A stretch of 64,000 nt of DNA from Macrostomum lignano (taxonomy: Eukaryota), in contig NIVC01003986.1 of NCBI GenBank assembly GCA_002269645.1, positions 2,341 to 66,340 on the forward strand, in the 5' to 3' direction. Positions 3,136 to 24,000 of this stretch are shown piece after piece. The stretch's first letter is position 1; each line of letters starts with the position of its first letter. The notes under the pieces were generated by a model. It was not told the DNA's origin, did no database searches, and worked only from the letters and a program-made list of their open reading frames with translations. The translations under genes were made by a program, and so were the position numbers.

Positions 3136-6100
3136 TGTCCCCCTCTAGGAAAAGAGAACTGCAACGGAAAGCGTTGGTGGTTATTGATTAGTGGGTTTGA
3201 GTATGAACGGGTGAGCTTAGAGAGCTTGGTGCTTAACAAAGTTAACGGCGAATTCGTTGAAAGTTTGGGATGAATCAGCGTCCATGCTGTTCAGCAATTA
3301 CGGCACAAATCGATCAGGGGCCCGACGATTTCGCGAGCTTCGGCGCGCCGGGTTGTCATTCGGTTGCTCTGGGGCATCCTGCTCATGGGTCGTTGGTGCC
3401 TGCTCTTCTCCGGCCGTCATTAACAGTGGGGGCTGTTGCACAGGCAGATTGTCAGACGCTTCCTCTTCGTCCGCTGTAAGGGCGTCCTGCTGTGGCATTG
3501 ATGGAGCCAACTGATTGGTGCTGGCCAGCTTCAGGCTCTCATCTTCTAGAATCCATGCCGTATTGTGCCCAGCATGCAGTCATTAGAAATGTAGCCTGGC
3601 CTCCCCTGAGTTGATTTTTGCGGCTGGTAGATGACGTTGTCTCCTTGCTCGAACTGTGAGACGACCGGCACACGAAGGCTTCTACCAAGCACCAACTCGG
3701 CTGGGCACTGACCGCGGCTTCTTGAGGAGCTTCGATGGTGCATGAGCACTTTTTGTAGGTAGAATGGGAATTCCATGTGTGTTATTCTTTCCGACGATGC
3801 GCGCAGCGCAGATTTAACGGTCTGCACTGCCTTCACTGCGAGGCCGTTTGCCTGAGGATAGTAGGCGGGTGACTCCATTTTCTTCACTCCATGTGCGCGC
3901 AGCCATGCGTTGAGGCTATCGGCTACAAATTCGGGTGCATTGTCTGACACAACTAGCTCTGCCATACCAAAGCGTGCAAAGACGGCGCAGAGGCACTGCT
4001 GGACAGTGCTGGCCACTCTGTTTTGGCAGGGAAACGCTTCTATCCAGCCAGAATGAGCGTCAGCGATAATAATTATGTCGCCAGCTCCTCTTACATGCGC
4101 CCAGTCCATGTGAATGCGTTGGAATGGATAGTCCGGGGTGGGCCATCGATCGCTGTCGTGGCCGACACGCGGTCGTAGGCGGCTGCAGACCGGGCAGCGT
4201 TGGACAAATTGTGACACACCCTGTTTGCATCCCAGGCCACCAGCAAGACGCTGAAAGCAGGTTGTATGAGGCCTAAATTCCAGAGTGGGTGTCATGGATT
4301 GCGTGAAAGGAGGCCCGGGCAACCGTGGGGGGATGTAAACCCTCCTCTGCATGTAAAGAAGTCCGTTTTCCAGCGTTAGCTTTTCGGAAACGGCTTTGAA
4401 GCTTGACTCTGCCTGCGAGCAACCTTGCCAGTTTCCATTGCGTACTCTCATTAGAATCTTCTGGGTGAACGGGTCTGCGTCCATTTCTGCCAAAATTCTT
4501 CCGGCCTCGATCACCGATGATTCGAATACCACGACGTTTATGGCATCAAACGTTTCCTTGTCATCTGCTGAAGGGTATCAAAGCGGAGCCGAGATAGAGC
4601 GTCAGCGTGTGGAATGTCGCGGCCTCGCACGTACTCGATGATGAAATCAAACTGCATGAGATGCATAGCCCAGCGCCCGATTCTCGCCGATGTGTTCAGA
4701 GGGATGCCACCGTGGAAAAGGCGAGTCAGTGGCTGATGATCTGTTTTGATTGTGAAGCTACGGCCATGAAGGAAGTGCTTCAGTCGAGCGACGGCCCAGA
4801 AGATGGCGAGGGCCTCGCGCTTAATATTTGAGTAATTCGATTCGGTGGATGACAGCGTCCTCGAAACAAATATTACGGGATGCCCTTCCTGAGTCACTAT
4901 TGAGCTCTTTGAGGCATCCGTTATTAGAGTCAGCTCCTTTGATAGGCTATAGGGCTGCACTATTGGCGCAGAGGCGATTTCAGCTTTGAGATTATTAAAA
5001 GCTCGAGAGCACTCGTCGGTCCAGTCAAAGTTGACGTTGGATTTTCGCCGATGGTTAAGAGGAGCGGTCTTTCGAGCGAAGTTCGGAATCAGTCTCCCAA
5101 AGAAGTTGACCAGTCCCAAAAAGCTCGCGAGCTCAGATTTGTTAGTCGGTGCAGAAACATGTCTGACTTTTTCAACAAGCCGTTCGTCTGGCTGGATTCC
5201 GGCGGCAGAGATCTTGAATCCAAGAAAAGAGATGGAATCGGTGTAGCTGAAGCACTTGGACTCGTTGATGGTGACGCGCTTTTCCTGTAGTCGGGTGCGC
5301 ACCGCGGCAAGACGCTTTTCTAGAGTAGCCGCATCTGGTGCGTGCACCAGGATGTCGTCTTGATAAATCAGCAGTCCTTTGATGTCTGACAAAATCGATT
5401 CCATAGTTCTCTGGAAGATGAACGAGGCGTTTTTCATCCCCATTTGCAGTCTGTTTACTCGGTACTGTCCACGCGACGTGTTGATGATGGAGAGATCTCT
5501 GGCCGCTTCATTCAGTTCAATTTGCCAGTAGGCCGAGCGGAGGTCGACGGTACACTGCAATCGGCACACGTTTGCAAAGTGCCGTCTTTCTTTTTCACCC
5601 AAACCACGGGCGACGCATTGCTCACGGGTCCCTCGATGGGTTCAATTACTCCTAGCTGTTGCAAGCGGTCGAGTTCGGCGTTAATCTGCCCCTCAATTGC
5701 AATAGGCACGGATCGAGCACGGCAGAATCTGGGTCTGTCACCGTCAACAACCTCCATGCGAGCTTTTACGCCTTTTATGGTAGGCAGTGGCTCAACTACG
5801 CGGGTGTTGTTCTGGGGCACACTTGTGGTGTGAAAGAGGTCCTCCGCGTCCAACAGATCGCGACCAAGCAAGCCATATGGTTTGTTCGAGTTGACCACAA
5901 TGAGCTCTGCAGGGTGCAGATGACCTCGTAGTTCAACCGTGGTTGCCAGCTTTCCGAGTGATTTCATCACGTGACCATCAAAGGCTTCTAGCCGCCGAAA
6001 ACACTTGTGCAGTGAGGGTTGACCCAGTCGTTCCCATTGCGAACTGGAGAGCACGGAGACGGAGGCGCCTGTATCGATCTGCATGTTGACGGTCTTGCCA

Positions 6101-6272
6101 TCGATAATAAGTGGCTCGGTGGCCACGTTGACAGCGTGGACGGTGCCCACGTCGCTGAGATGCATAAGGGAAGTCTTCTCATGTGGCTCATTGTCTATTT
6201 CATGAGCTGATGGGTCAGTGAATTGGTGCACAGGCCGTGCAGATGATGAGCGACATACGCTGGCAAAGTCTT
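2926..6272 (-). mobile_element. Ty3/Gypsy LTR retrotransposon, frameshifted and 5'-truncated
   Basis: Pol pieces in PR-RT-RH-INT order: protease IDTGASVS (5512-6231), RT DLRSAYWQI/YQDD and RNase H TDAS/TDHQPL (4538-5602), integrase HMDWA/SDNAPEF/PQANG (3546-4532), basic tail RRSSRNRRAPDRF (3298-3510). The end of the gag zinc knuckle (FASVCRS) is at ~6250-6270. The rest of gag and the 5' LTR are absent. Confidence 0.93.
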
Positions 6273-6595: not shown

Positions 6596-6699
6596 TTTGT
6601 CCATAGACAGAATGAGCGCCCTCACTATGGTATGAAATAGAATATCTAATTGCCGAAATAGAATGAGAGTTTTGTTAAAATTATGAACGGAAAGGTGTA
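6596..6699. mobile_element. Partial copy of the CCATAGAC-core palindromic element (related to 10378-10557)
   Basis: TTTGTCCATAGACAGAATGA-CGCCCTCA-TATGGTATGA-ATAGAATATC-AATTGCCGAAA...GGTGTA matches 10378-10557 in direct orientation. Confidence 0.75.
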
Positions 6700-7197
6700 C
6701 GAGTGTATTAAAAACTTCATCCAGTTTGTAAGCGAACAGTTTTATCAGTTTTATTCGGTTTATTAGTAATAAAAGGCTTTCAGGACCTGAATGTGGGTAA
6801 AATTGCATTACCCATTAATACGAGCGTAATAAGATGCTTAACAATCCGTTTATTCTCAAACACATAAAATCTTCAGATGTTGATCAAGAGCAAAAATGAG
6901 ATTGGCAGGGGATCCGATCGGGACTCTGATGGAGCGAACTGGCAGGAAAGTGCTGCGTCAAAATAAGCTTTTCAAAGAAACCGTTCAACAAATACTCAAG
7001 TATCACAGAGACGAAACTGAAAAAAAAAGATTTTCGGGCTGCCCCGAAAACACGTTTGAGTCTTACAAAACAATTCGCGCACATTAATCCATAGACAATT
7101 TTGCCCTCCAACACAGATTCGACCTGCGATAGCTGGTGTCAAAAACAGAAGGCATGTCCGCCAGAACCGCAGACCAGAGAGAATCGAACAAAGGAGC

Positions 7198-8616
7198 TCA
7201 GAAGAACCAAAAACGACGCGAGGGAGCCGGATTTGACTCCGGCTTCGGCTTCGGCTTCGGCTTCATCCGCGGTATGTAGATCTTTTTTTGAACAGGCAGC
7301 CTTTTATCCGGAACAATGAACACTCGGCTGCCGCGCACTGACACCATGGAGATGCTGAGGATCGAGGCCCGCGGAGCGCCAAACCACACCTCCGGGATGG
7401 CGCCGATGCTCAGCGCCAGCTCGATAAAGTCATTCACTGTTGCGTAGCGAAGGCGAACCGCCGGCGGTAACTCCTGGACCGGCATCGACAACAGCTGCGA
7501 CACGTTCATAGCTGGCAGACTTCGAGCAAACTTGTCCAGGTCGTGGTCAGCTGAGCGACCGATCACTTTGTCGATGGCGCTCTTGGTCAAAGTGACATTG
7601 AACGTGTTCAGCGCCATCCGGCTCAAGTAGTTGTGGTAGAATATGTCGCCGTACGCGTAGCTCTTTCCAGGCTCGCTGCTTCGGCCACCGTTCCGGCCGA
7701 TGTTGAACGTCCGGGACAGCTCGGGACGCACGCAGACGAGGCTGTTATTCATCATGTAGTGCCTCAGAAAGTCGTCGTATTGCGTCTTCGGCCAGAATTC
7801 CCTGATCTGCAGCCAGTGGCGCCGATTGATCATCCAGCCGAGTCCAGGGAAGAAGTCAGTCCGGTGCAGCAGCTGTGGGTCCTCGGTCACGAGGCCAATC
7901 TGGCCGTTGTCGTTCCAAGCGGACACGCAGAAGATGCTCTCGTCGGAGTCGAGCGCTCTTCGCAGTGAGCGAAAATACTGGTAGAAGTCCGGCGCAATCA
8001 ACATGTCATCCTCCATCAGTATGACATAGGAGAAGTTCAGCTTCAGTATCAGGTAGTCCAACACGCGCAGGTAATGCCGCGCAATCTTCACGTAGCTATC
8101 GCTTGACGCAGTAAAGTTGCGACTTTTGTCATCGGCTAAGCGTAACAGTTTGACCTCATTGGATTTTATCTGCTGCAGCACAGCAGTTGTTTGCTTTTCT
8201 GTACCATCCAGCGACATCAGGAGGCGGAATCCGCTCGCCGGCTTCTGAGCAAGCAGCTGGTTGACCACCTGATGCACTTCTGGTCTCCTCGCGGCCAGCA
8301 CCACCACAGCGATGTCTCTGCCTTGGTTTTGCTCGGGGGGTTCATCCGTTGCGTTCGTTGAATTCAGCCGAAATATTTCAGGCTCCTGAAACTCTGGCAA
8401 ATTATCGTCCGGTTCTTCAGTCTCTTTCGTCTTAGGAGTTTCTGTCTTTTTTATGTGGCTTTGCAGAGCCAGAAAAGGAACTAGAAATCCGAGGACAGTC
8501 AAGATGACAAACATCAAGACGAGGCCAAGTTTTTTTCCATTAGAAAGACGCCGTAGACCCTGGCGTAGCAGCAAACTGAATTTTGAAACTCGTCGACCGA
8601 ACCGTGTCGAGTCCAT
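7198..8616 (-). CDS. MGAT1: GT13 family alpha-1,3-mannosyl-glycoprotein N-acetylglucosaminyltransferase I-like protein, single exon, 472 aa
   Basis: Type II TM segment LGLVLMFVILTVLGFLVPFLAL; motifs MEDDMLIAPDFYQYF (EDD), CVSAWNDNG, RTDFFPGLGWM, CVRPELSRTFNIG. Could be a paralog rather than the true ortholog. Confidence 0.9.
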   Translation of the reverse strand: MDSTRFGRRVSKFSLLLRQGLRRLSNGKKLGLVLMFVILTVLGFLVPFLALQSHIKKTETPKTKETEEPDDNLPEFQEPEIFRLNSTNATDEPPEQNQGRDIAVVVLAARRPEVHQVVNQLLAQKPASGFRLLMSLDGTEKQTTAVLQQIKSNEVKLLRLADDKSRNFTASSDSYVKIARHYLRVLDYLILKLNFSYVILMEDDMLIAPDFYQYFRSLRRALDSDESIFCVSAWNDNGQIGLVTEDPQLLHRTDFFPGLGWMINRRHWLQIREFWPKTQYDDFLRHYMMNNSLVCVRPELSRTFNIGRNGGRSSEPGKSYAYGDIFYHNYLSRMALNTFNVTLTKSAIDKVIGRSADHDLDKFARSLPAMNVSQLLSMPVQELPPAVRLRYATVNDFIELALSIGAIPEVWFGAPRASILSISMVSVRGSRVFIVPDKRLPVQKKIYIPRMKPKPKPKPESNPAPSRRFWFF

Positions 8617-9555
8617 TGAGATTGCCGGGTCAATTGCTGCTCTACCCTGGCTGAAACCTGAGTGCGAAATGCAAAAATTCTATGCAGTGCCAATGCGCTG
8701 GTGGCGTTCTCGGCTCGGAGCGAAACTTTATTGCCTTCTCTCGCGCTCATTGCTGAGCGCATGCAGGGTCAGTATGCTTTGCCTTAAGACCGCCTGTGGT
8801 GCTGGGGCTCCTTGGCTCCTATTGTTAAGCGTATGCACAGTTTGGAGTAGGAGTGTTGCAACTGCAACCTTTGAGTCTCTTCCATAAAAATAGAAACCCT
8901 TTATAGACTGCAGTTTAACGGGGTTCGGAGAATGCAGTGGGGCTTTTTGCGACCTAAGAGTGGCGGCGAGAAGGTAGAGAGACATGCATGAGAGAGAAGA
9001 ATTAATAGTAAATTTCCATGGCAAATGAAAACAATTGACGGAAAGACACAAGAATAGATATTCAGTTTTGAGTGCGTAGTTGTCTTCGCTACGAGTGCTA
9101 AGACTGAAATTGTAAAATTGTTTAATTTCATTTCGTACAATAATCCAAAGAAAGATTCTTGGAACGGACTTCTAAGATTAGCTCGTAGGAACAGCCGACT
9201 ATTAAAAATGTAAAAAAAGACCCGGTCTAGCGTAAATCAGACACGATTTCGTGATGACCCAGCGATTATGACCCAGATGACATCCTCGACTGCATGCAGT
9301 GTTGAAGATCTTGGGACATCGACTAACGATCGATAGGAAATTGCTTTGATTGTCGGTTGTGGGGTTTACTGCACGCTATCTTTACTTGCCGCACAAGTGC
9401 TTTGATTGCCGGTTGCTGGGTTTACTGCACGCTATTTTTACTTGCCGCACAAGTTCTTCTCTTTTCGAGATAGGATTGCACTGTAGACAAAAATGGTTAA
9501 CAATACGCTTTAGTTAGTTTCTTCTTTCTCAGAAGAACAGCTTTTCTTCGAAAGT

Positions 9556-10557
9556 TACACCTTTTCCGTTCAATTTTAACGAAACTCGGATTCCATTTCG
9601 GCAAGCAGCATTCAATATCATTATTCTATATTTAGGTCGTAGCTATTTCAACCCTCATCCGAATTCGGCAAGCTGACATTCAATATCATTATTCTATATT
9701 TAGGTCGTAGCTATTTCAACCCTCATCCGAATTCGGCAAGCTGACATTCAATATCATTATTCTATATTTAGCTCGTAGCTATTTCAACCCTCATCCGAAT
9801 TCGGCAAGCTGACATTCAATATCATTATTCTATATTTAGCTCGTAGCTATTTCAACCCTCATCCGAATTCGGCAAGCTGACATTCAATATCATTATTCTA
9901 TATTTAGCTCGTAGCTATTTCAACCCTCATCCGAATTCGGCAAGCTGACATTCAATATCATTATTCTATATTTAGCTCGTAGCTATTTCAACCCTCATCC
10001 GAATTCGGCAAGCTGACATTCAATATCATTATTCTATATTTAGCTCGTAGCTATTTCAACCCTCATCCGAATTCGGCAAGCTGACATTCAATATCATTAT
10101 TCTATATTTAGCTCGTAGCTATTTCAACCCTCATCCGAATTCGGCAAGCTGACATTCAATATCATTATTCTATATTTAGCTCGTAGCTATTTCAACCCTC
10201 ATCCGAATTCGGCAAGCTGACATTCAATATCATTATTCTATATTTAGGTCGTAGCTATTTCAACCCTCATCCGAATTCGGCAAGCAGCATTCAATATCAT
10301 TATTCTATATTTAGGTCGTAGCTATTTCAACCCTCATCCGAATTCGGCAAGCAGCATTCAATTTCGGCAATTGGATAGTTTGTCCATAGACAGAATGAAC
10401 GCCCTCAATATGGTATGAGATAGAATATCCAATTGCCGAAACTGAATGCTGCTTGCTAGTTGGAATGACGGTTTTAGTAGCTAAATATACGTTAGAATGC
10501 TAGTTTAGCTTGCCGAAATAGAATGCGAGTTTTTTAAACTGAATAGAATAAGGTGTA
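9556..10557. mobile_element. MITE-like element with ~55-bp imperfect TIRs, an internal 68-bp satellite and a CCATAGAC core
   Basis: Left end TACACCTTTTCCGTTCAATTTTAACGAAACTCGGATTCCATTTCGGCAAGC is inverted to the right end GCTTGCCGAAATAGAATGCGAGTTTTTTAAACTGAATAGAATAAGGTGTA. An internal hairpin (~10327-10458) encloses CCATAGAC at 10384. Confidence 0.7.
9598..10350. repeat. 68-bp satellite, ~11 copies
   Basis: GAATTC recurs at 9661, 9729, 9797 (period 68). Confidence 0.95.
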
Positions 10558-10590
10558 AATAGTACATTAACGCCCGCAAAGCATGGGTAT

Positions 10591-10969
10591 TACTATAGCT
10601 TTTTGCAGCTTATCTGGGCTTACGCGCATTGAATTTAATCCAAGATAGGTTTGCCAACGCTGATGGATGCTGTAAACCATCTTTCTTCTATATTCAGCAA
10701 CCTTAAAATGTCCTTTGGGTGTTTACCTGTTGAGTGCTTTGATCACAATACGTTCGACAACCTAGCATGGTTCACAATTCTGGGACTGATCTTGCTCCTC
10801 CGCAACAGTTGCAAATAAAGCTATGGACCAAATTGATGCTTGTTTGACCAAATTAAATGCCGCTGTGGGAGCCTTGCTACCATAGACAAAAGCTCCGTTA
10901 CATTGGCAAACCTATCTTGGATTAAATTCAATGCGCGTAAGCCCAAATGGGCTGCAAAAAGCTATATTA
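10591..10969 (-). mobile_element. TIR element carrying a Tc1/IS630-like N-terminal HTH remnant
   Basis: ~65-bp inverted arms starting TACTATAGCTTTTTGC and ending GCAAAAAGCTATATTA. The internal minus strand reads like ARLSN..VIKALNR.KHPKDILRLLNIE.KMVYSIHQRWQ (HTH-like, frameshifted). CCATAGAC at 10880. Confidence 0.65.
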
Positions 10970-11396
10970 TTGTGCCATAGACATTTGTGTCCTTGAAAAA
11001 GTGGGACAGAATAATCGGGCGTTAAATGTCATTAACTGCCCGCTAATTTGCCTTAAAGTAAGTTTAAAGCAATAAAGTCCTGCAAGCGGGCTTAAATGTA
11101 GTCTATGGCATTAAAAGGCAAGAATAAGTGCCCAGCGGGCACAAAGGTCATGGTACAATGGGTGTTCACTGCATTGTCAAAAATCAGCCTTTAGGATAAT
11201 GCAATCGTCTATGGTTAAACCATGAGCACATTCCATTTCTTTTTTCACTTAAACTTCAGGATAATGATTTCGAACTCGGGATAATGGACGCCTATTTTTA
11301 GAACAAAACAACAAACACCAACAACAAAAGATTAGCGCTATGGAAAGTTAATAGTGCAGTATCAATATGGCGCAATTGTAATAGTGCCGAAGACCA

Positions 11397-12908
11397 TTAC
11401 AGATTGCAATTGTTGAAAGTGCAGTTGTTCATAATAAAGATATTCCGACCGTTCATCGGACGACCATCAGACACGCTCACTGCTTCTTGCACGATGGAAC
11501 TTTGGATGCTGATGTCAGCAGGCATTGTTTCTTGACCGTGGGTCGCGGCGCTTTGTCCAATGTTCAACGCACGCGACACTGCATCGCTGCATTGTTGCAG
11601 GGACTTGTCCCGTTTAACTGCCAGGTAGCGCCGGACCGTGCTCTCGGACTTTTGACCCGTGATAGCCATGATCTCGCTCATCGAATGCCCAGCCGATTCC
11701 AGGTCACACACTCTGCTAACTCTAGAACAATTGAGCAATTGAACTGTAAATTAGACTCAATCAGACACAAGTTGAAAACATCACATGCACTTCCCCGACC
11801 AACTGACTCACCGAATGCTATGATTGGTGTATTCCTTAGACAGCTTCGCTTTTTTGCTTCATGAAAGTCCTCAGGTAATTTATTCCTCGTTTCTGCTTTG
11901 AGCAAAATCGTCTGGTGCCTCCTGCATTCTTCAGTGGCTGGGAAACAATGAGTCGTTCTTCGTCTCCGTTGGTAATATAGCCATGTAGTCGTCCACAATT
12001 CCAACATCGTAGATTCTCGCCTGCTTTACGTCGATGTCACGCTTGGCTCGATTGGGATCGGCAGACTTGTTTTTGGAATTCAGTACAGGCAATGCGTAGT
12101 ACGGTCTTCCAACCGAGTCTTCGCGCTTCACCAACCACTTCTTGGATTTAATCGAGATGTTCCTTCCTCGTTCTCCTAGGCCGTACATAACGCGAAATAG
12201 AAACTCATCCTGAGTGGTCTCTGCACTTGATCTGTCGAAATACGTCCGTAGCTTCTCCATATCACCCTCCTCGATTGGCGGATATGATCGAACTTGACCG
12301 CCGGAGTTGTGCCATTCCCTGACTTTCATTCGGAGCATTCTATTCACTAGAACGAATTCCTCACCATCGATAATGTTGATCGTTAATCCAGCCACCATAG
12401 TCAGAAAGCGCTGTATCCCGGCGCGGATGCACACAAGACTTGCAGGCGAGTATGGACCGCCATCATGGCGACGCAATTGGTAGTAGTAATACCTAAGAAA
12501 CTCACACATCTCAACACGACTCAATTCATGAACAGCAGCTCCATGTTCCAATTGCACAAAAACGTTACCATGAGCAATCATCTGCTCTCGCGTCTTGGTT
12601 GGTAGGCTCACTATTTCATCTTTCGTCATTGCCTCTTGCATATCCAAAGGAACTCGTTTCGGCTCAGTTTCATTCTCTCCATCCTCTTCAGCTGGAGCAT
12701 CATCCTCGGTCGGTAGCAGAGGCAAATCATCGGCAGTATCACCGCTCTCAAGAAAGTGCAAGAAGTTCAAAAAGTCTTCGTTATCCTTCATGTCCTTCTG
12801 AGATGTGGAAAGTCTTGAGATCCAATTGAGTTCGCTGCTAGATACGTTGGCTAAACTTTCGACAGGCAGATTGCCCCAGTTGATCGGATATGACGTCTGG
12901 TTTTCCAT
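11397..12908 (-). pseudogene. Crypton-like (DUF3504-type) tyrosine recombinase with one intron and two compensating frameshifts
   Basis: N-terminal LRYYYYQLRRHDGGPYSPASLVCIRAGIQRFL; catalytic-type motifs GLGERGRN (R), SKNK (K), YTNHSIR (HxxR), ITGQKSESTVRRY (H-position Q, Y). GT-AG intron 11722-11811 splits the HSIR arginine codon. Confidence 0.85.
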
Positions 12909-13110
12909 GGCCAGGCAAATGTAGCTATTTACGTTTTATTCTCTCTTTCTCTCCACATCTCCTTCCTTTCCACCCTCTTAACCCCCGGCCTGTTTGCAAC
13001 TTCGTTGTCTATGGCCCAAACTCCAGTAAACCACCTCAGTCTTTATGTCTCTCTCTCCTCGGTAACCCCTCTCTCCTTTCGATGCCCTTTTTGTCTATGG
13101 CCCCACTGAA

Positions 13111-13384
13111 ATCCGACAATGAATGATTCCTGCACGGTCAGGAGTCACGAGTGCGGGAATGACATCTGCACGAGTGGGCTCCACATTGCAGATGTCATTC
13201 CCGCACTCGTGAACGTGAAGGAATCCCATTGTCGGATTATTCATCGTGCAGGAATGCGCAAAACCGTGCAGGAATGCATTTCTGCGCCTAATGCTTTTTC
13301 AGTGAGATTTTACCATAGACATCCATTCCTGCACACAAAAGAGTGCAAGAATGCCATTCCTGCATGGAAAATCAGCCGACAATG
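13111..13384. mobile_element. Non-coding hairpin plus inverted-repeat module (putative non-autonomous YR-element derivative)
   Basis: Perfect 26-bp stem (13145-13170/13187-13212), outer arms ATCCGACAATG/CATTGTCGGAT, overlapping second IR 13227-13256/13355-13384, and CCATAGAC at 13313. Confidence 0.7.
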
Positions 13385-13419
13385 CGGTTATTCGTAAGTG
13401 AGACTTTAGGATAATAGTT

Positions 13420-13720
13420 GGGCTTACGCGCAGCGCATTGAGTCCAAAATGTTTGCCAATGCAACGGAGCTTTTGTCTATGGTAGAAAGGCTGGCACAGC
13501 GGCATTTAATTTGGTCCAACAAGCATCAATTTGGTCCATAGCTTCATTTGCAACTGCTGCGGAGGAGCAAGATCAGCTCCATAATTGTGAACCATATGCT
13601 AGGTTGTCGAACGAATGCCACTGGCTTGTGATCGAAGCACTCGGCAGAGGTGAACACCCAAAGGACATTTCAAGATTGCTGAATATAGAAAAAAGATGGT
13701 TTACAGCATCCATCAGCGTG
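13420..13720 (+). mobile_element. Inverted partial copy of the 10591-10969 element
   Basis: Reverse-complement match to ~10655-10945; encodes YARLSNECHWLVIEALGRGEHPKDISRLLNIEKR; GTCTATGG at 13475. Confidence 0.85.
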
Positions 13721-14625
13721 GTCGAGGCTGCACTCCCTCATCTGTTCTGCATCTGCATCTGTTCGATTTATTCGATTTGGTTTACGTACAATTTTCTCTG
13801 CGCCTTCGTGGGTGTCACGTCATTGGATACGTAGTGGATGCTCCAATTTTGGCGATTATGGTTAAAAGCCTTTAATGGGAGCACCCGAATTTGTAGCCCG
13901 GCTCGTCCATATACAGTCTCCATCCAGAATTTTTGTTGAACCAAGTAATTCGTTGCATCCAAATTGTACACACATTTGTTGGGACAGTTGTGAATATTAT
14001 GTGACTGACAACTATGCACTTGAATCAAGTTTTTTTCGCCGCTTGCACATTGAGGACAGTTCATTGTCATTTTTGCTACCGTGTTGCTTCTACATTTTAG
14101 ACAAGTTCAGGAATCGCGCTACGAGCATATTAAGTATTATTTTTGTATTGAATGAGTGCAGTTCATATGTCATTCTATATTTTTATTCTTGTTGTTGCCA
14201 TCCTTGCTACTTCCTCGTTGCTTCCACACTTTAGAACGCATAGGAATCCCGTAATTTCTGGGTATTTCTTCGTTCCTTGTTAAACTTTCACACCTTGTTA
14301 ATCTTTTGGTTAAAATTAAAATTATTAGTAGAAACACATGTACATAAAAGGCTGTATTCACTAGACTTTAATTTCTATTCATGTATTATCCAGATTGCTT
14401 CAGAAGAAAAAGGCCACTAAAACCATAGACACGAATTCAAAGCGGCCTTTTAGAATTCTGCCAGTATTTGCAAGTGTAACATCCTGTGTTGTTAGGTAGT
14501 CCATGTATAGAATCTGTGCTCCCAGACGTGCTTCAGTGCCTCATTTTCATATGGTCTAGCGAACAAGTGAGATGAAATAATTAATTTTCTACCCTGGACA
14601 AAACAGTTATCACGCACGCTGACCA

Positions 14626-15122
14626 GGACACACGTTGGTGCCGTGACCAGGACACAATGTTGGTGCCGTGACCAGGACACACGTTGGTGCCGTGACCAGG
14701 ACACAATGTTGGTGCCGTGACCAGGACACAATGTTGGTGCCGTGACCAGGACACACTGTTGGTGACGTGACCAGGACACAATGTTGGTGCCGTGACCAGG
14801 ACACAATGTTGGTGCCGTGACCAGGACACAATGTTGGTGACGTGACCAGGACACACGTTGGTGCCGTGAACCAGGACACACTGTTGGTGCCGTGACCAGG
14901 ACACAATGTTGGTGCCGTGACCAGGACACACTGTTGGTGACATGACCAAGACACACGTTGGTGCCGTGACCAGGACACAATGTTGGTGCCGTGACCAGGA
15001 CACACTGTTGGTGACGTGACCAGGACACACGTTGGTGCCGTGACCAGGACACAATGTTGGTGCCGTGACCAGGACACACTGTTGGTGCCGTGACCAGGAC
15101 ACACTGTTGGTGCCGTGACCGG
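14626..15122. repeat. 24-25-bp minisatellite, ~20 copies
   Basis: Unit GACACAATGTTGGTGCCGTGACCAG. Confidence 0.95.
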
Positions 15123-15477
15123 ACACAGAAGAAGAGGCATCGGCTGCTTGGAGAACCCGATTATTGATAGGCAGGCAAATGGCAGGAGTTTAAAAAAGCC
15201 ATTAATGAGGATTTATTTTTTCAGCATATCTTCAATTTTGAAACATTTTGTTACAGAACCCGAGCGCAACGTCAAGATATTGACTACTCGGACATTGAAC
15301 CAATAGTCAGTGTGAATTGCTGGTGTAAATTATTTAAGTTTTCCTCAGCTCGGATGGCTGACGGCAGATCAGTCGGGACTGTGAGAGGTGGCATCAGAGG
15401 CAGCATCGATAGGAGCAGCAGACACGCAAATACATTAAATAGTTCTGAGTTGTTGCCCCCCCCCCCAGAGCAGCCAG

Positions 15478-17882
15478 TCAGAAGTTCTTGTACGCCCAGA
15501 TGAAGTTCTCCGTTGTCCAGTTCAGGCGCCGCAGCCTAGTAATGGGGCTGATTCGCAGCGACAGGATCCGGCCATACACGTAGCAACAGAGGCACATGAG
15601 GCAGAGCAGCGCGCAGCTCTGGAACCGGTAGAGCTTCAGGTGCTCCCAGGCCAGGTGCTGCCCCCGATTGGGGCTCCGCTTGCCGCAGCCAGTGTTGGGC
15701 AGACCCTGCACCCAGTGGTAGGGGTGGCTCTTCCCCGGAGGCTTGGTGAGGCGGCAGAACTCGCGCATGTCCGCGGACTGAGCAAAGACGCCGATCGCTT
15801 CGGGCGGTGAGCTATTCCGCGCCAGCAGCTCGTTGAGGCTGCAGATGTCCTCCCCGAACCGCATGAGGCGGGTCGCCACTCGCAGCGTCATCGCCCGGGA
15901 TTCCAGAAGGTCCTTCAAAGAGATCGCCTTGCCCGATTTGGTGCAGAAGTCCGCGGGAAAGTCCTTGCCGCCTATTTTTAGTGAGAACGGCTCGCTCTGC
16001 TGGAAGCTAAGAGGGTGATCGATGACAGGTAAGACAACAGTTGAGACAGCTGAGACAACAGTTGAGACAGCTGAGACAACAGTTGAGACAGCTGAGACAA
16101 CAGTTGAGACAGCTGAGACAACAGTTGAGACAGCTGAGACAACAGTTGAGACAGCTGAGACAACAGTTGAGACAGCTGAGACAACAGTTGAGACAGCTGA
16201 GACAACAGTTGAGACAGCTGAGACAACAGTTGAGACAGCTGAGACAACAGTTGAGACAGCTGAGACAACAGTTGAGACAGCTGAGACAACAGTTGAGACA
16301 GCTGAGACAACAGTTGAGACAGCTGAGACAACAGTTGAGACAGCTGAGACAACAGTTGAGACAGCTGAGACAACAGTTGAGACAGCTGAGACAACAGTTG
16401 AGACAGCTGAGACAACAGTTGAGACAGCTGAGACAACAGTTGAGACAGCTGAGACAACAGTTGAGACAGCTGAGACAACAGTTGAGACAGCTGAGACAAC
16501 AGTTGAGACAGCTGAGACAACAGTTGAGACAGCTGAGACAACAGTTGAGACAGCTGAGACAACAGTTGAGACAGCTGAGACAACAGTTGAGACAGCTGAG
16601 ACAACAGTTGAGACAGCTGAGACAACAGTTGAGACAGCTGAGACAACAGTTGAGACAGCTGAGACAAAAGTTGAGACAGCTGAGACGACAGTTGAGACAA
16701 CAACTGAGACAATACGAAGAGACCGACCATGCCATTTAAAACAAAAAATGCCCATATTATTACTTACAAGTAGTGAATTACTAGCAATCTTGTGCCCCCC
16801 TTCGGAGCGGCCAAGAAGCAAGGGAAATAATTATTTGTGTAATCGTACTCGTATTTGCCTCAATATTTCAGCAAACCCCTCAAGCCTCGATATCTCAGCA
16901 CATCCCCCAGTAAGCCCTGACATATTAGCAATTTTCCCGTAAGCCGTGACAATCGTCCCAGGTCAAGTCAATTTCGACTCTGTAAATCCCCACATAAAAT
17001 CAGGGGTGGCATGTGCTGTCCAGCGAACGTGGCGGCAAGGCCATGTTCGGTGAACCATTACCGCACCGAGCCTTGTGACAACTGGAGGTTTTTTGCAATA
17101 AATCCTGGATAGGATCAACCCTAGGTGGTTTCACTTCAATTTATTGCTGGGGACAAAGTTTTATTACACTTGAACATCTGGCGCCTTACTTGCGACACCC
17201 TGTGTAAATACGCTGGGGCGTCCTCATGGATTTTATGGTAGGGGGGACAAAGCCAAGAATTCAACATGTACATGACTAAATTTTGGCACTTATTTTGGCG
17301 CCGCAGGCATTCCTTTTAGCGTCGTAGGCATTCCTTTTAGCGCCGCAGGCACTCATTTCAGCGCCGCAGGCACTCGCTTTAGCGCCGCAGGCACTCATTT
17401 TAGCGCCGCAGGCACTCGCTTTAGCGCCGCAGGCACTCATTTCAGCGCCGAAGGCGCTATATTTTGGCGCCCTGAAGAAAAATTATTGATTACCACAACG
17501 ACTCACAAGGTGGGGTGGTGGGGGGGGACAAAGCATTGGCATGTCCCCCCCAGAGCTTTTACTAGGGGGGGGGGGCACATGTCCCCCTGTCCCCCCCCCC
17601 GGTGGCGACGCGCCTGTAAATACGGTATCTTACTCGAACCCCAAAATCAAGTTCTATTCACCTGTCAATCAATCAGAACAATGACATCTCATTATCAATC
17701 ATGTAACCGAAGGTATATTGATTGCCAGAAAATTACAGCTTTGAGTTTTCTAACTTGGCCTCGCGAAACGCTTAAATGACAAATCCATCAACTTGACCAA
17801 CAACTCACCCTTGCGCTACAAGCACTGCTGTCAGGCTGACTGCTGCAATGAAGACAAATTTGAAGGCTGTTTCTAAAGGCAT
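15478..17882 (-). CDS. Unrecognised ~200-aa secreted Cys-containing protein, 2 exons (17882-17809, 16006-15478)
   Basis: Exon 1 MPLETAFKFVFIAAVSLTAVLVAQG is signal-peptide-like and ends GG|GTGAGT (phase 2). Exon 2 starts CTCTTAG|C TTC CAG (matching phase), is strongly GC3-biased and ends ...AYKNF*. Confidence 0.7.
16033..16710. repeat. 21-bp intronic minisatellite, ~32 copies
   Basis: Unit ACAGTTGAGACAGCTGAGACA. Confidence 0.97.
17213..17616. mobile_element. hAT-type MITE (404 bp)
   Basis: Termini CTGGGGCGTC...GACGCGCCTG; 8-bp target site duplication TAAATACG at 17205-17212 and 17617-17624; internal ~21-bp repeats. Confidence 0.85.
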
Positions 17883-17940
17883 GCTGAGGGGAGACAAACA
17901 GCGATGAGACGGCTTGCCTGAGGAATGCTGTGGGCTGTGG

Positions 17941-18988
17941 CAATGTAAGATTACTACTAGGTTTACTCGTACGATAATAGTCTTGGCTCGAGTGCGCGAA
18001 GCGCACGAGTGCCATAGACTATTATCGCACTCGAAAGCCTAGTAGTAATCTTACATTGTCCCATGACTGAGCGTGCGTTGAAAAAATTCTTCGTCACAGC
18101 ACTGTACTTTATTATCTGCACGCTTTTTGTTCCCGCAGCTAGGAGTTCCTACCATAGACATTTTCTTAGTGACCATAGACAATTTCTTGCTATGCACAAG
18201 CTTCTGCTCGTGAGTTTGGCCCCATATGGATTCATTATTTCCTAACGGCATGAGAAGCGGCATGACGGCCGGTGAGATCTCCCACCATTTAGAGTGGGCC
18301 GACGTTGAGAAGCTTGTGGACGAGCAGTTACGTCTCCAAGCAACTAGTGTGGACGACAACGAGGAGCTGAACCGCCTATTCGACTCCATCCCTGATTTGA
18401 ACGACGACTTGGCCTCGATCGACCTTGACGCATCAATCCGGGCGCTGGAGCAGGAGACCGATGTAAAATCGTCTAAGAAGCATGAGGCTCAATACGTCGC
18501 GAAATTTCGCGATTTCTTGGCCAAGTATCCACACCTGCGCGTCGATTTGGACACCTCGCAACCTGAGGAGCTGAGCGTTGGCCTGCGCTACTTTTACGGC
18601 ACTCTTCGCAAGACTGATGGCCAGCCGTATGCTCCTAGCAGCCTCGTGTGCATTCGCGCTGCCTTGTTCCGCTACCTGATGAAGAACCGGGGCATCAACA
18701 TCATTTTCGATGGTCGATTCTACTCTGCAAATCAAATGCTGAAGGCCGGTGGGCGTCTTTTCTTTGCCCGCGGTGGCCGCGTGGACCACTTCCAGGCAAT
18801 GGAGCCATCGGACCTACAGAAACTGGGTGACTCGCTGTACGCTATTATCTGCACGCTTTTTCATTATCTGCACGCTTTTTTCATTATCTGCACGCTTTTT
18901 TGGCTACGCCGCATAGGGTTGGGCCATAGACTGTAAGATTAATGCACGCTTTTTGGACAAAAAACGCACGCTCAGTCATGGGACAATG
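17941..18988 (+). mobile_element. Internally deleted Crypton-like element: terminal hairpin, 26-bp IRs and truncated YR ORF
   Basis: Hairpin 17941-18058; perfect IR CATTGTCCCATGACTGAGCGTGCGTT (18054-18079) and its complement (18963-18988); CCATAGAC at 18012, 18152, 18173 and 18924. Confidence 0.75.
18226..18936 (+). pseudogene. N-terminal half of a second Crypton-like tyrosine recombinase
   Basis: LRYFYGTLRKTDGQPYAPSSLVCIRAALFRYL...INII aligns by eye with the 11931-12908 ORF. It is truncated after MEPSDLQKLG, before any catalytic residue. Confidence 0.8.
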
Positions 18989-19119
18989 AAGTGAAGCCGG
19001 TTTTCAGAATTCAGCTACTCTCCGGTAAGCAAGCTTTAGTCTATGGCCCAAACTGCAGCTGGATCGAAAATTCTTTCTAGCAGTCAGTCAGTGGCTTTGA
19101 ACAGCATCGTAGCTGAGCT

Positions 19120-20947: not shown

Positions 20948-20950
20948 CTC

Positions 20951-21043
<93 letters not shown>

Positions 21044-24000
21044 GGCAGGCAGACAGGCAGACAGACAGACAGACAGACAGACAGGCAGGCAGGCAGACAG
21101 ACAGGCAGATACTCACCTCTTCCCGCTTCTCTTCGCCCTCCTCCATCATCTTGGCGACGTTCTCAAACTTTTCGAGCTCCTGCCGCATGGTGTCGATCTT
21201 CGCCCGCTGGGTTTCGATCTCATCGGCCGTCTTCCTCTCCAGCTGGTCGATCTTGGCGGCGTCTCGCACGAGCTTCTCGTGACTCTCCGCCAGCGCCAAC
21301 ACCGTGGCGTCCGCTCGGTCCCGCTCGCCGGCTTTGAAGCTCAGCTGCTCGCGCATCGCCTTCAGCTCCGCCTCCGTCGGCAGGCCAGCCGCCCCCACCG
21401 TGGTCACCATGGCAACGCTGCGCGACAAGCCATCCAGCAGGTCGACTACCTGGCGCTCCCGCTCGGCCAGGACGGCCTTCTCGGCAGCCGCAGAGCGCTC
21501 GAAGTCGCCCAGGAAGCTGTCCATTTGCTCCTCGCGCTTGCGCAGCTCGCGGTACTGCTGCGAACGCTGCCCGGAGGTCGCCTCGATCTCCTCCTCGGTG
21601 GCGCGGATCTCCGCCTGCACCTCCGACAGTCGCGCTTGCGCCTCTTGGCTCTGCCGCTCCATTGTACCGATCTCAGCGTTGTCCTCGCGCACCTGCGGCC
21701 GCGGGAGGCGGGACTCTGCGTGACTCTCTGCTTTCCTGACTCTCATCTCATACACACCCATAGACTTTGCCATCTCATCCCACTTGGAATGCCATCTCAA
21801 CCCACTTGAATCCGATCTCATCCCACTTGAATCCCATCTCATCTGTCAGATTTATCCACATAAACTGACAAAAACCGTATCAATTCCTATTTATTCTATG
21901 TACTTTTGCGTTTAGTTGCCCCCAAATCGGGCCGTTTTACTTTCCTGTTGTGTGCACGATCTAGTTAGAACGTATAATAATTGTACGATCGATAATTTAG
22001 GTCTCGGTGTGCGTGGCGCACGAAGAGGTCCAGTTTATTACTTAAATATATAGTCGGGCCCTCGCCCCGGTTTTTTACTTTTGATTCACTTTCTCTCTAC
22101 CGCCTACTTTTACGACCGCGTGTTTCTATGAGCTAAATATGGCTTCAAGTGCTGTTCATTCCTTAGTTAATTATTTGTCCCACCAGCAATTGGACATCAT
22201 CCCATTTTGAAAGCAATCATATCCTATTTGGATTCCCACCTTATCCCACTTAGATTCCCATCTCAATCCGTTCGGCCATCCGAGCATCTCACGAGCCTCA
22301 GAGGCCGAGACTCACCTGGTTGAGCAGCCGCTCCCGCTCCTGGTTGGGGTCCCCGGCCGCCCGCTCGTCCTCAAGCAGGGCGTCCCGACGATCCGCCAGC
22401 TCGCGAAGCTGTTCGCACAGGCGCACAGCCTCCTGCTTGATGAGGTTGCCGCTCAGCTCGTCCTCCAGGCGGGCCCGCTGCCTCCGCAGGTTGTCGAGCT
22501 CGCGCTGGCTGGCCTCGAGCTCCCGGCTGGTGCGCTCCGCCTCCTCTCGGAGCTGCCGGTGCTGCCGCTGCTGCTCCGGGCGCATCCGAGCCACGATCGA
22601 GTCCGCCATGCGGCGCTCCTGCGGGATATTCGGGTGTGTCTGTCACTCTGGCTTGACTGTCACTCTGGCTTGACTGTCACTCTGGCTTGACTGTCACTCT
22701 GGCTTGACTGTCACTCTGGCTTGACTGTCACTCTGGCTTGACTGTCACTCTGGCTTGACTGTCACTCTGGCTTGACTGTCACTCTGGCTTGACTGTCACT
22801 CTGGCTTGACTGTCACTCTGGCTTGACTGTCACTCTGGCTTGACTGTCACTCTGGCTTGACTGTCACTCTGGCTTGACTGTCACTCTGGCTTGACTGTCA
22901 CTCTGGCTTGACTGTCACTCTGGATTGACTGTCACTCTGGCTTGTTTGTCACTCTGGCTTGACTGTCACTCTGGCTTGACTGTCACTCTGGCTTGACTGT
23001 CACTCTGGCTTGACTGTCACTCTGGCTTGACTGTCACTCTGGCTTGACTGTCACTCTGGCTTGACTGTCACTCTGGCTTGACTGTCACTCTGGCTTGACT
23101 GTCACTCTGGCTTGACTGTCACTCTGGATTGACTGTCACTCTGGCTTGACTGTCACTCTGGATTGACTGTCACTCTGGCTTGTTTGTCACTCTGGCTTGA
23201 CTGTCACTCTGGCTTGACTGTCACTCTGGCTTGACTGTCACTCTGGCTTGACTGTCACTTTGGCTTGACTGTCACTCTGGCTTGACTGTCACTCAGAATC
23301 CAATCTGTCACCCCAGCACCCAGCGGCTGCCCACCTGGTCCAGCTCCCGCTCAGCCGTGGCCACATCCGCTTCGGCCCGCTTCCGCTCCTCAAAGGTGGC
23401 CTCCAGGGCGGCCTCCTGGGCCTCGTTGCGGTCGCGCAGCTCGTCGCACTCGAGCTGCACCTCGGCGGAGTCCTGCTCCGTGTTCAGCCGGTCCAGCAGT
23501 GTGTTGGCATCGGCCAGCTGGCCCTGCAGGTCCTGGAGGGATTTTGGGGGGGGTGTCGAATGGCGGGTCTGTAGTCACGTGACTGAGCTAGGATCCGTGG
23601 TGCCAAGGTGCCAAGCGGACACAAATGGGGGACGAGATCGCTAAAGGCGTTGCGCCACTCGGTCACATAATCCACCGATTGGCTCTTGCTAAAATGAAAG
23701 ACTCAGAAGTCTCTCGCAGAGCTGGTGATCGACCAGGATTGCTGAAAACTGAAGAATGCAAGCCATAGATGTGGCCCGTAGTTGCTTGGGGAGTTGCGTA
23801 GCGCTGTGGGTAACGCCTCGGAGAGACACCAGACTCTGGTGCCGGCCGAACTCAGGCAGCTGGCTCACCTGGATGTCCTTGGCCAGGCTCTCGGCCATTG
23901 CCTCGTACTGGGCGAAGCTGCCGCTGTCCCGCTGCAGCTCTTCGTGGCTGGCCCTCAGCTTGGTGGTCTCGGCGTCCAGCTCAGCGATGCGAGTGCGCAG

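Follow-up and report, generated by a model that had tools for sequence, protein, structure and literature searches.

An exact 8-mer common to unrelated class II transposons of Macrostomum lignano is a putative promoter-proximal binding site

Results

Features of the locus

We analysed a 64,000-nt stretch of Macrostomum lignano DNA (contig NIVC01003986.1, positions 2,341 to 66,340), referred to here as the window. It carries 24 exact copies of the 8-mer CCATAGAC, 17 of which fall within 6596-19046, around two Crypton-like tyrosine recombinase (YR) genes. A preliminary description of this DNA had reported these copies, and its coordinates, strands and regional count agree exactly with our own. 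The features of the window are as follows.

1002-1009, plus strand: motif copy between minisatellite arrays
6601-6608, plus strand: motif copy at the beginning of the repeat 6596-6665, which is 91% identical to 10379-10448
7089-7096, plus strand: motif copy flanking the GnT-I gene on its 3' side; the homeolog has CCATAGAA
9218-14170, unstranded: nested-repeat block of ~5 kb, window-specific and missing from the homeologous contig, with 9 motif copies and YR1
10347-10456, unstranded: hairpin with 38-nt arms; motif 10384-10391 at the stem/loop boundary
10591-10969, unstranded: MITE B, TA-flanked, with 67-nt TIRs that start with TATAGCTTTTTGCAGC
10975-10982, plus strand: motif copy 6 nt beyond the right end of MITE B
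11101-11108, minus strand: motif copy in the YR1 3' flank, oriented as those at 11207, 13007 and 13093
11207-11214, minus strand: motif copy 183 bp beyond the YR1 stop codon
11397-12908, minus strand: YR1, Crypton-like tyrosine-recombinase pseudogene of two exons, ATG at 12908
13007-13014, minus strand: sense motif copy 99 bp before the YR1 ATG, in the extended form TTTGGGCCATAGACAA
13093-13100, minus strand: sense motif copy 185 bp before the YR1 ATG
13313-13320, plus strand: motif copy inside a nest of short inverted repeats (13105-13390) upstream of YR1
13418-13834, plus strand: truncated 5' part of a B-type long-TIR element, an inverted copy of 10657-10946
14423-14430, plus strand: motif copy ~250 bp past the 5-kb block
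17936-18063, unstranded: hairpin with 48-nt arms; motif 18012-18019 at the loop/arm boundary
18054-18988, unstranded: fragment of the YR2 element, bounded by a perfect 26-nt inverted repeat on either side (18054-18079, 18963-18988)
18152-18180, plus strand: motif copies at 18152 and 18173 (21 bp apart), which precede the YR2 ATG by 67 and 46 bp in sense orientation
18226-18936, plus strand: YR2, truncated Crypton-like ORF with a QRICH1-type N-terminal domain only, lacking the catalytic domain
18924-18931, plus strand: motif copy 57 nt inside the right inverted repeat of the YR2 element
19039-19046, minus strand: motif copy 51 nt outside the right inverted repeat of the YR2 element, in the TTTGGGCCATAGAC form
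21758-21765, plus strand: motif copy at the 5' edge of the minus-strand coiled-coil ORF 20949-21842, antisense to the ORF
27995-28910, unstranded: element C, TA-flanked, with 162-nt TIRs (95%) and a DDE_3 remnant at 28269-28580 on the minus strand
28976-28983, plus strand: motif copy 66 nt beyond the right end of element C
60033-60465, unstranded: MITE D, TA-flanked, with 143-nt TIRs (97%)

Both recombinase genes are Crypton-like and both are defective. In YR1, which is ~95% identical to an M. lignano 'Tyr recombinase domain-containing protein', the part ahead of the HSIR motif includes a frameshifted stretch that contains 4 in-frame stops; YR2 is truncated. The reported pair of sense copies upstream of each ATG was confirmed, as was the presence of GTCTATGGCCCAAACT at both 13007 and 19039. 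Motif 18012-18019 lies 35 nt outside the left inverted repeat of the YR2 element, and motif 13475-13482 lies 29 bp ahead of an HTH-like ORF (13511-13834). A location in stems or inverted-repeat arms, previously said to hold for most copies of the region, is clear there for those at 10384, 10880, 13475 and 18012, and outside it for 28082/28816 and 60115/60376, so that 'mostly' overstates it. The copy at 7089 is probably incidental, given that the homeolog reads CCATAGAA. Separately, the copy at 6601-6608 adjoins the point at which an LTR-retroelement pol fragment (3549-6231, minus strand) is truncated.

The nest at 6.6-19 kb is probably a pile-up of elements and fragments missing from the homeologous contig, and would comprise two dead Crypton-like copies, Tc1-like long-TIR elements with MITEs, and hairpin repeats. 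Such a pile-up would account for a local motif density ten times the genome background.

The 8-mer is enriched and sharply defined

The enrichment of CCATAGAC is large: 1.39 copies are expected from 100 dinucleotide-preserving shuffles of the window, none of which reached 24 and the highest of which gave 5. Unrelated flanks surround 20 of the 24 copies, and the word ranks first among all 8-mers of the window when ranked by copies with unrelated flanks. Each one-mismatch variant occurs only 0-4 times in the window; because the variants stay at background, the word is very sharp. The same holds across our total sample of 240 kb, drawn from an M. lignano assembly of ~760 Mb, which has 52 exact copies against a median of ~4 for the one-mismatch variants, the sole outlier among these being satellite-derived. 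Among 41 independent copies, information in the flanks is confined to positions -6 to +10, and the consensus around the 8-mer is TTTKKG-CCATAGAC-AAT.

Enrichment beyond the window, which the preliminary description had proposed as a check, was found in 154 kb of M. lignano DNA from unrelated loci picked via DEG/ENaC paralogs, blind to YR genes and motif. These loci contain 21 copies, ~14 of them independent, where 3.7 are expected (a 4-6-fold over-representation). An 87-bp tandem array in L011 (15986-16428) has the motif in every unit. We found no description of the motif in the searchable literature and, to our knowledge, the 8-mer matches no binding site.

The 8-mer lies upstream of genes from several transposon superfamilies

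Copies of CCATAGAC are found 29-320 bp upstream of the ORF starts of 4/4 Crypton-like YR genes (tblastn hits projected to starts), 2/2 mariners, 3/3 Tc1-like ORFs and the one THAP ORF, in mixed orientation relative to the ORF. The expected proximity to YR genes was thus observed, but without specificity, since other class II transposon genes are equally close. The four YR genes are themselves only 20-50% identical in pairwise comparison. Of ~12 host genes checked, a single one carries the motif in the 500 bp upstream (transposon genes 10/11 versus host genes 1/12, Fisher's test, p = 1e-4). Several of the transposon genes were first spotted through adjoining motif copies, so this comparison carries an ascertainment bias. 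The bias was reduced, though not removed, by a Pfam survey of every other ORF of 110 aa or longer in the sample, which found no additional class II genes. A general test for the motif upstream of any ORF start gave a modest result (12 versus 6.7 +/- 2.4 expected, p = 0.03). The 5' regions of LTR-retroelement and Polinton-like sequences in the sample lack CCATAGAC. Motif-to-ATG distances vary widely, the shortest of them leaving too little room for a classical upstream element plus a 5' UTR. The scarce use of the motif by host genes is unusual for a general transcription-factor site.

The 8-mer keeps its distance from the ends of long-TIR elements

Five TA-flanked long-TIR Tc1-like/MITE families that have diverged from one another (the window's B, C and D, together with L003 4348-4768 and L011 6569-7355) have the common terminus TA|(CTA)TAGCtTTTTGC and arms that are otherwise unalignable. 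In 5/5 of these families, the exact 8-mer is found 83-110 nt from the ends: at 10880-10887 in MITE B, 83-90 nt from the right end; at 28082 and 28816 in element C, each 88-95 nt from its own end; and at 60115 and 60376 in MITE D, each 83-90 nt from its own end and flipped in orientation relative to MITE B and element C. The L011 element, which has a paired-type HTH ORF, carries the motif at both ends within otherwise unalignable sequence, an arrangement that a 5' promoter role alone does not explain.

Insertion junctions do not coincide with the 8-mer

Empty sites in the homeolog delimit three insertions: a Crypton (L012 1658-3528) and two mariners (L010 17990-18935 and L012 11831-13178). Each has one motif, 44-149 bp upstream of its ATG, and none elsewhere inside. 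The L012 Crypton, compared with the L010 empty site, is the one case in which the junction of a YR element could be resolved. This intact element is inserted between two direct motif copies 101 bp apart; its junction, at T(T)ATA, is separated from the closest external motifs by 37 and 57 bp, and both of these motifs are already in the empty site. The junctions of the window-specific 5-kb block (9218-14170) likewise contain no motif.

Discussion

A shared promoter-proximal site

The 8-mer recurs in the 5' regions and the inverted-repeat arms of many unrelated DNA transposons, which makes a shared host-factor site its most likely meaning. We suggest, with somewhat better than even confidence, that CCATAGAC is a cis-element of many unrelated class II families, a promoter-proximal site that one highly sequence-specific DNA-binding protein would bind. 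That protein is probably a host factor, although a domesticated transposon protein is also possible. Judged by position alone, promoter function is the most likely role: the putative site would act near the promoter, in either orientation, and drive transcription of the transposase or recombinase, whereas MITEs and deleted copies would inherit it together with the element ends. A host-factor site common to autonomous and non-autonomous modules was one of the options in the preliminary description, and it fits all the data.

We reasoned that the 8-mer might instead be an architectural or accessory site for transposition, at which a host bending or tethering factor assists complex assembly or guides integration with no part in transcription. 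The near-fixed subterminal distance (83-110 nt) at both ends in five long-TIR families is consistent with this, as are the position of the motif between family-specific direct repeats that resemble transposase binding sites, its retention at both ends of the L011 element despite unalignable sequence, and its retention in MITEs, which need only cis-acting transposition signals. Moreover, copies are found within 75 nt outside 6/10 well-bounded insertions (naive p = 8e-8, computed for 6/9), although this statistic is confounded by general transposon clustering. However, a synapsis cofactor would be expected at both ends, whereas both empty-site mariners have the motif at the 5' end only and the Crypton has one internal copy; in addition, the transposition chemistries of YR and DDE elements are unrelated. 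We therefore regard an accessory role as unlikely, though the most serious of the alternatives.

Still less probable is binding by a transposon-encoded or transposon-derived protein, for example one with a THAP domain, as activator or repressor of many families. A THAP-domain ORF (Pfam E = 8e-15) lies directly downstream of a 6-copy motif cluster in L003, and the extended TTTGGGCCATAGAC subclass has a TxxGGGC-like core, which we take to be similar to THAP1-type sites; the GGGC flank, however, occurs in only a minority of copies. A Caenorhabditis elegans THAP protein, HIM-17, does bind MITE-borne motifs (PMC9757741). Against this, the single THAP ORF of the sample looks like another motif-bearing transposon gene.

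The preliminary description had favoured a recognition or crossover core of Crypton tyrosine recombinases, with excision, inversion or cassette exchange between copies. All four Crypton-like genes have copies within 300 bp upstream, YR1 is flanked by two plus two copies in the same orientation (11101, 11207; 13007, 13093), the L012 Crypton lies between direct copies, and the termini of stramenopile CryptonS elements, TATGG, equal the final 5 nt of GTCTATGG (PMC3212892). The empty-site comparison, however, places the sole resolved Crypton joint off the motif and shows the outside copies in the empty site too, and the block junctions are motif-free. The exact word also occupies equivalent positions in mariner, Tc1-like/MITE and THAP elements; one exact common site would be unexpected for recombinases as diverged as these; two more distant relatives (L004, L005) lack the motif; and both YR genes of the window are defective. 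A core site would require inverted copies separated by 6-8 bp, an arrangement that no CCATAGAC pair shows; the tightest pairs are direct, with spacings of 19-21 bp. We conclude that a recombinase core with cassette-like excision or inversion is unsupported and improbable in general, and that it is largely refuted for the L012 family.

Equally improbable is that CCATAGAC has no function, being either a passenger in a small sequence module that elements exchange or a word that survived by chance in a genome biased towards a few words. The majority of copies are in repeats, the sole clearly non-repeat alignable copy (7089) is not conserved in the homeolog, and arm-to-arm conservation within elements is no better than neutral (p ~0.1, an estimate from arm identities). 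However, at least 41 independent contexts have the exact word amid unalignable flanks, its subterminal position is the same across five diverged families, YR genes with as little as 20% identity retain it in their 5' regions, and its one-mismatch variants are not enriched. Least probable of all is that the motif marks piRNA-type small-RNA or chromatin-boundary units, like the nematode Ruby motif, with the 12-kb nest as an RNA-producing cluster of transposon fragments: dense clustering in two orientations within a transposon graveyard, the L011 array and the near-absence from host protein-coding promoters would agree with it, but no conserved signal was found to follow the motif at a fixed spacing, there is no Rfam or tRNA hit near the motif, and consistent placement upstream of transposase and recombinase ORFs in intact elements suggests mRNA promoters.

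Comparison with known systems

The YR genes have the QRICH1/DUF3504/Phage_integrase architecture of CryptonA-type (DUF3504) transposons, and the L012 element is Crypton-like in having a single ORF, neither reverse transcriptase nor TIRs, and a 4-5 bp direct repeat as flank (PMC3212892, PMC13465315). The Crypton host phyla listed in 2011 do not include Platyhelminthes (PMC3212892). In the Crypton-like elements described here, CCATAGAC is not a terminal repeat, and the perfect 26-nt inverted repeats of the YR2 element are atypical for a Crypton.

Tc1/mariner transposons of the IR/DR type, such as Sleeping Beauty with HMGB1, combine subterminal transposase binding sites with a host cofactor. Our long-TIR elements resemble them in having long TIRs with repeated family-specific sites and an extra element between these at a fixed distance from the end. 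Unlike in IR/DR elements, one and the same 8-mer occurs in families with different presumed transposase sites, both mariners lack it at their 3' ends, and YR and THAP elements contain it too.

In the same organism, LTR retrotransposons are reported to exploit the heat-shock response (bioRxiv 10.1101/2024.12.18.629116; published as PMC12801592), a further case of transposons using a host transcriptional pathway. That pathway is well known and serves LTR retroelements, which in our sample lack CCATAGAC in their 5' regions.

A further parallel is with the m1/m2 motifs of the CERP2 and CELE2 MITEs, which are bound by HIM-17 at Caenorhabditis germline promoters and serve there as promoter elements; these are short, lineage-specific and without a match to a known regulatory motif, and lie in MITE inverted repeats as thousands of mostly silent copies (PMC9757741). 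CCATAGAC is likewise a short transposon-borne motif in MITE inverted repeats, with a putative single binding factor and a putative promoter role. It differs in being a single exact 8-mer rather than a pair at fixed spacing, in being common to Crypton-like YR, mariner, Tc1-like and THAP elements rather than to two related MITE families, and in its scarcity at host gene promoters in the sample. Transposon-borne promoter motifs bound by one factor thus have a known precedent (PMC9757741).

An exact 8-mer is over-represented across M. lignano loci

The 8-mer CCATAGAC, counted together with its complement GTCTATGG, has 24 copies in the window, all of them matching the coordinates given in the preliminary description, and 17 of these copies lie inside 6596-19046, as stated there. 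Dinucleotide-preserving shuffles of the window contained 1.39 copies on average and never more than 5. After clustering by flanks, 20 of the 24 copies are independent, and by that count the word is the top 8-mer of the window. It is also unusually sharp, since each of its 24 possible one-mismatch variants occurs only zero to four times in the window. Shortly before the window, which spans positions 2341-66340 of contig NIVC01003986.1 (Mlig_3_7 genome, assembly GCA_002269645.1), two more exact copies occur at positions 1020 and 1119 of that record; they are 99 bp apart and oppositely oriented.

As a background sample, we used seven further M. lignano loci (154 kb) that were reached via DEG/ENaC paralogs, with contigs found through a representative search and cluster members; these loci were therefore picked independently of the motif and of tyrosine-recombinase (YR) genes. 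They contain 21 copies, compared with 3.7 expected under a second-order Markov model, or about 14 once an 87-bp tandem array and homeolog duplicates are collapsed. The background loci and the part of the window outside 6.6-19 kb have the same motif density, 0.14 per kb; in the nest it is 1.36 per kb. In total, the 240 kb of M. lignano DNA surveyed holds 52 exact copies, and 41 independent copies give the consensus TTTKKG-CCATAGAC-AAT. Flank information in these 41 copies is confined to positions -6 to +10; a start signal at fixed distance downstream, as in Ruby-type small-RNA promoters, was sought, and no positional information was found past +10.

Some of the copies are tandemly repeated. The 87-bp array, at 15986-16428 of the M. 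lignano locus L011, carries TTTTGGCCATAGACAG in every unit, and its period is close to the 86-106 bp spacing of motif pairs elsewhere. The only abundant variant, the one-mismatch word CCACAGAC, is explained by a 21-bp satellite, GGCACTCATTTTAGCGCCGCA, that carries it on three contigs (window 17285-17471; L007, another M. lignano locus, ~5200-5760; L011 ~14590-15260).

The motif lies upstream of class II transposon genes

A tblastn census with all transposon proteins found placed the motif 29-320 bp upstream of four of four YR genes, including one found in Logan run SRR28338156, a relative of 45% identity with copies at -94 and -184. The same interval holds the motif, in mixed orientation, at both mariners, all three Tc1-like ORFs and a THAP ORF; a decayed Harbinger-like ORF in the census has no motif at the upstream position. 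Scanning every other ORF of 110 aa or longer against Pfam revealed no more class II genes, just LTR integrases and a Polinton-like block. Among about 12 host genes checked, only one has the motif within 500 bp upstream; the co-option at host promoters expected of an m1m2/HIM-17-type motif was not seen among them. Comparing transposon genes (10/11) with host genes (1/12) gives p = 1e-4, with an ascertainment bias that the census lowers and does not remove. Two metagenome YRs that are more distantly related have no motif copy; a YR-profile scan of metagenomes yielded one locus, which lacks the motif.

The motif also lies within 75 nt outside six of ten well-bounded insertions, a count whose null model is confounded by transposon clustering. 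This proximity could reflect nested insertion into the 5′ regions of other elements, or targeted integration. Other content of the window includes the pol fragment of an LTR retroelement, an XendoU exon and a DEG/ENaC ORF. It is rich in minisatellites (58 TRF rows, periods 4-155 bp), and many of its long six-frame ORFs are spurious because they are translations of these arrays.

Filled and empty sites show a single 5′ copy in three insertions

Three clean filled/empty cases came from a pair of homeologous contigs, L010 and L012. The first is a Crypton-like element at L012 1658-3528 (1871 bp), flanked by TTCTA and TTATA, whose empty site in L010 (~3807-3811) reads TTATA; the filled and empty sites are evidence of its mobility. 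Its single intact ORF encodes 475 aa (QRICH1 + DUF3504 + Phage_integrase), 20-22% identical to other YRs. The open frame retains ...SLR... and GHS...RY, with Q in the place of the box II His. One motif lies inside the element, 44 bp upstream of the ATG. Two motifs flank the element at distances of 57 and 37 bp, and both pre-exist in the empty site. The target site is inside a decayed ORF (L010 3436-4002; L012 1293-1716 / 3527-3722), into whose region both outside copies fall and whose N-terminus presumably resembles a PIF/Harbinger nuclease.

The second case is a full-length mariner at L012 11831-13178 (empty site L010 11824/11825), with 30-bp terminal inverted repeats (TIRs), a TA duplication proven against the empty site, and a 349-aa ORF with HTH_48, HTH_32 and DDE_3 domains. 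Its single motif is 96 nt from the 5′ end and 121 bp upstream of the ATG. The third, a deleted mariner at L010 17990-18935 (HTH_48 + DDE_3), carries its one motif at nt 39-46, and the ATG follows 149 bp downstream of it. No other motif copy is present inside any of the three elements. Absence of the L012 Crypton and the L012 mariner from the 95-98% identical homeologous contig suggests recent mobility.

Cryptons lack TIRs and have 4-6 bp terminal direct repeats that reflect target microhomology (PMC3212892). The L012 element, with a T(T)ATA terminus and no TIR, fits the definition of a Crypton in having a YR, of the DUF3504/QRICH1 type known from animals, as its sole ORF and no reverse transcriptase (PMC3212892, PMC13465315). 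Its junction may be the first filled/empty site described at base level for a flatworm Crypton-like element.

Long-TIR Tc1-like elements and MITEs carry the motif near their ends

Four palindromic elements share the TA-flanked terminus TA|(CTA)TAGCtTTTTGCagC, their arms being otherwise unalignable, and a fifth member was found in L011:

Long-TIR elements with the motif
Window 10591-10969: palindromic element B
Window 27995-28910: palindromic element C, containing a DDE_3 remnant
Window 60033-60465: palindromic element D, motif flipped
L003 (homeologous contig of the window) 4348-4768: palindromic element
L011 6569-7355: fifth member, with a paired-type HTH ORF (HTH_32)

The 8-mer is 83-95 nt from the ends in the first four, in flipped orientation in D, and 110 and 108 nt from the ends in the L011 element, where the sequence is no longer alignable end-to-end. 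Consistent with a Tc1/mariner origin, TA stands beside both ends of all the long-TIR elements, the TIRs are 67-162 nt long, and parts of a DDE/D transposase with an N-terminal paired-type HTH are present in C (DDE_3 remnant) and in the L011 element (HTH_32), alongside the domains of the two mariners. B, D and the L003 element are non-coding MITEs.

The YR genes of the window are dead Crypton-like copies

The preliminary description recognized two tyrosine recombinase genes in the nest. Both are Crypton-like, with QRICH1 matches and homology to the M. lignano ‘Tyr recombinase domain-containing protein’, and both are defective. YR1 (11397-12908, minus strand), ~95% identical to entries of that name, is disrupted immediately before the HSIR motif by a frameshifted stretch containing four in-frame stops, and YR2 (18226-18936, plus strand) retains the N-terminal QRICH1-type domain alone and lacks the catalytic domain. 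Neither has intact catalytic residues (R-H-R-H/W-Y), and we conclude from the frameshift, stops and truncation that both are dead copies. Two YR paralogs (P0001, P0002) exist as UniRef entries only, with no contig on record.

The inverted arms flanking YR1 (10657-10946, 13418-13719) are B-family copies rather than termini of a YR element. Upstream of YR1, at 12909-13420, short repeats are densely packed in both orientations; this stretch includes five copies of CGTGCAGGAATG, as well as CATTGTCGGATT and a 26-nt perfect hairpin (13145-13212). YR2 is enclosed by perfect 26-nt inverted repeats (18054-18079 / 18963-18988), in place of the TIR-less end seen in the L012 element. These are atypical for a Crypton, and a TIR element may have taken up the fragment or may enclose it. 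Repeats of ATCTGCACGCTTTTT are subterminal at both ends of the fragment.

An intronless GnT-I ORF of 472 aa (7198-8616, minus strand) has a 95.5% identical homeolog on NIVC01000986.1 (L003 10001-11419); this contig also has a third, decayed copy resembling GnT-I at L003 69-2319, 8 kb away from the homeolog. The alignment to L003 runs at 93% over window 6638-9217 and next resumes at 14179, so that window 9218-14170, with YR1 and nine motif copies, is absent from L003, which carries 45 bp of unrelated filler in its place. The motif copy at 7089, the sole one in alignable non-repeat sequence, reads CCATAGAA in L003. L003 has a cluster of its own, six motif copies in 600 bp, divided between the palindromic MITE and the upstream region of the THAP-domain ORF (-101 and -316); no YR gene was found across 21 kb of L003. 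The same contig contains a Polinton/Maverick-like block (L003 13045-21419):

Features of the Polinton/Maverick-like block
L003 14614-15123, minus strand: PLA2-like ORF
L003 15154-16146: rve integrase
L003 16749-19250: protein-primed type B DNA polymerase ORF

The motif is not specific to recombinases

Two sense copies of the motif lie 50-190 bp upstream of the ATG of YR1 and of YR2, as correctly noted at the outset. One proposal made there was that the motif is a recombination core that might permit a cassette-like system. A YR core site consists of two inverted 11-13 bp binding sites with a 6-8 bp spacer (PMC3212892). The nearest motif copies are 19-21 bp apart and direct, and no two oppositely oriented copies come closer than 115 bp. 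Neither the L012 Crypton junctions nor those of the 5-kb block at 9218-14170 carry the motif. The motif is also found in mariner, Tc1-like/MITE and THAP elements. We conclude that it is not recombinase-specific, because elements of unrelated chemistry, as well as YRs only 20-50% identical to each other, carry it, and because the one resolvable YR junction is elsewhere. The recombination-core reading is thus unsupported; a cassette or shufflon-like system would have been more surprising.

Several other explanations were rejected. The motif is neither one TIR family nor an insertion target, because the flanks are unrelated on either side of the word. Rfam and tRNA scans gave no match near motif copies, so that neither an snRNA/SL-RNA PSE nor a SINE explains them. 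A start-codon context is rejected because the ATG within GTCTATGG opens no consistent ORF, and an assembly artefact because motif copies are conserved between homeologous contigs. The co-occurring k-mers CATTGTC and GGATTAA were discarded as confounded by overlapping contexts and a shared TIR family, and a scan for bacterial-type promoters and terminators gave chance-level results, as expected for an animal genome. We know of no match between the 8-mer and YY1 (CCATnTT) or SMAD (GTCT/AGAC) sites beyond 4 bases.

A proposed shared host-factor site

The alternative raised in the preliminary description, a host-factor site shared among elements, is supported by the presence of the motif, amid unrelated flanks, in elements with unrelated chemistries. 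Like transposon-borne motifs of the m1m2/HIM-17 type, the word is commoner than base composition predicts and sits in the inverted repeats or 5′ regions of transposons. The simplest reading of these sequence patterns is that one very specific DNA-binding factor recognizes a putative site kept in element 5′ regions; the motif would fall in TIRs where the 5′ region lies within the TIR. A promoter-proximal role is suggested because all three proven insertions have one copy only, at the 5′ side. Its presence at both ends of L011 6569-7355, the variable distance to the ATG, and its near absence at host promoters fit such a role less well.

A bolder, rather improbable version of the host-factor reading is that one factor acting on the extended consensus switches many unrelated superfamilies, and that bound sites attract insertions, making nests self-reinforcing. 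Elements would then land beside each other's 5′ regions, building nests like that at 6.6-19 kb, and several superfamilies would have converged on one host factor for expression and targeting.

The flatworm M. lignano is used as a transgenic model in regeneration research, and most of its genome is repeats. An exact word common to Crypton-like, mariner, Tc1-like and THAP elements would offer a handle on how its DNA transposons are switched on, probably in germline or stem cells; it points to a DNA-binding protein of high specificity, and transgenes could use it as a compact promoter module. The analysis also yields an intact mariner and an intact Crypton, both apparently mobile until recently, and the role of the motif is directly testable with existing transgenesis and genomics resources.

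The searchable literature contained nothing resembling the motif: raw 8-mer text searches gave PCR primers only, and no such motif is mentioned in the M. lignano genome paper, in a preprint on flatworm chromatin motifs, or in what a search for ‘Macrostomum’ with ‘Crypton’ brought up. We conclude that the class II transposons of M. lignano carry a real cis-element here, one that is apparently undescribed. M. lignano LTR retrotransposons are reported to hijack the heat-shock response (bioRxiv 10.1101/2024.12.18.629116); compared with that case, the motif differs in being an exact 8-mer, in spanning several superfamilies and in its little use at host genes. Among described systems, m1m2/HIM-17 of Caenorhabditis MITEs (PMC9757741) comes closest; the motif is set apart from it as a single exact 8-mer that is shared by several superfamilies and hardly occurs at host genes.
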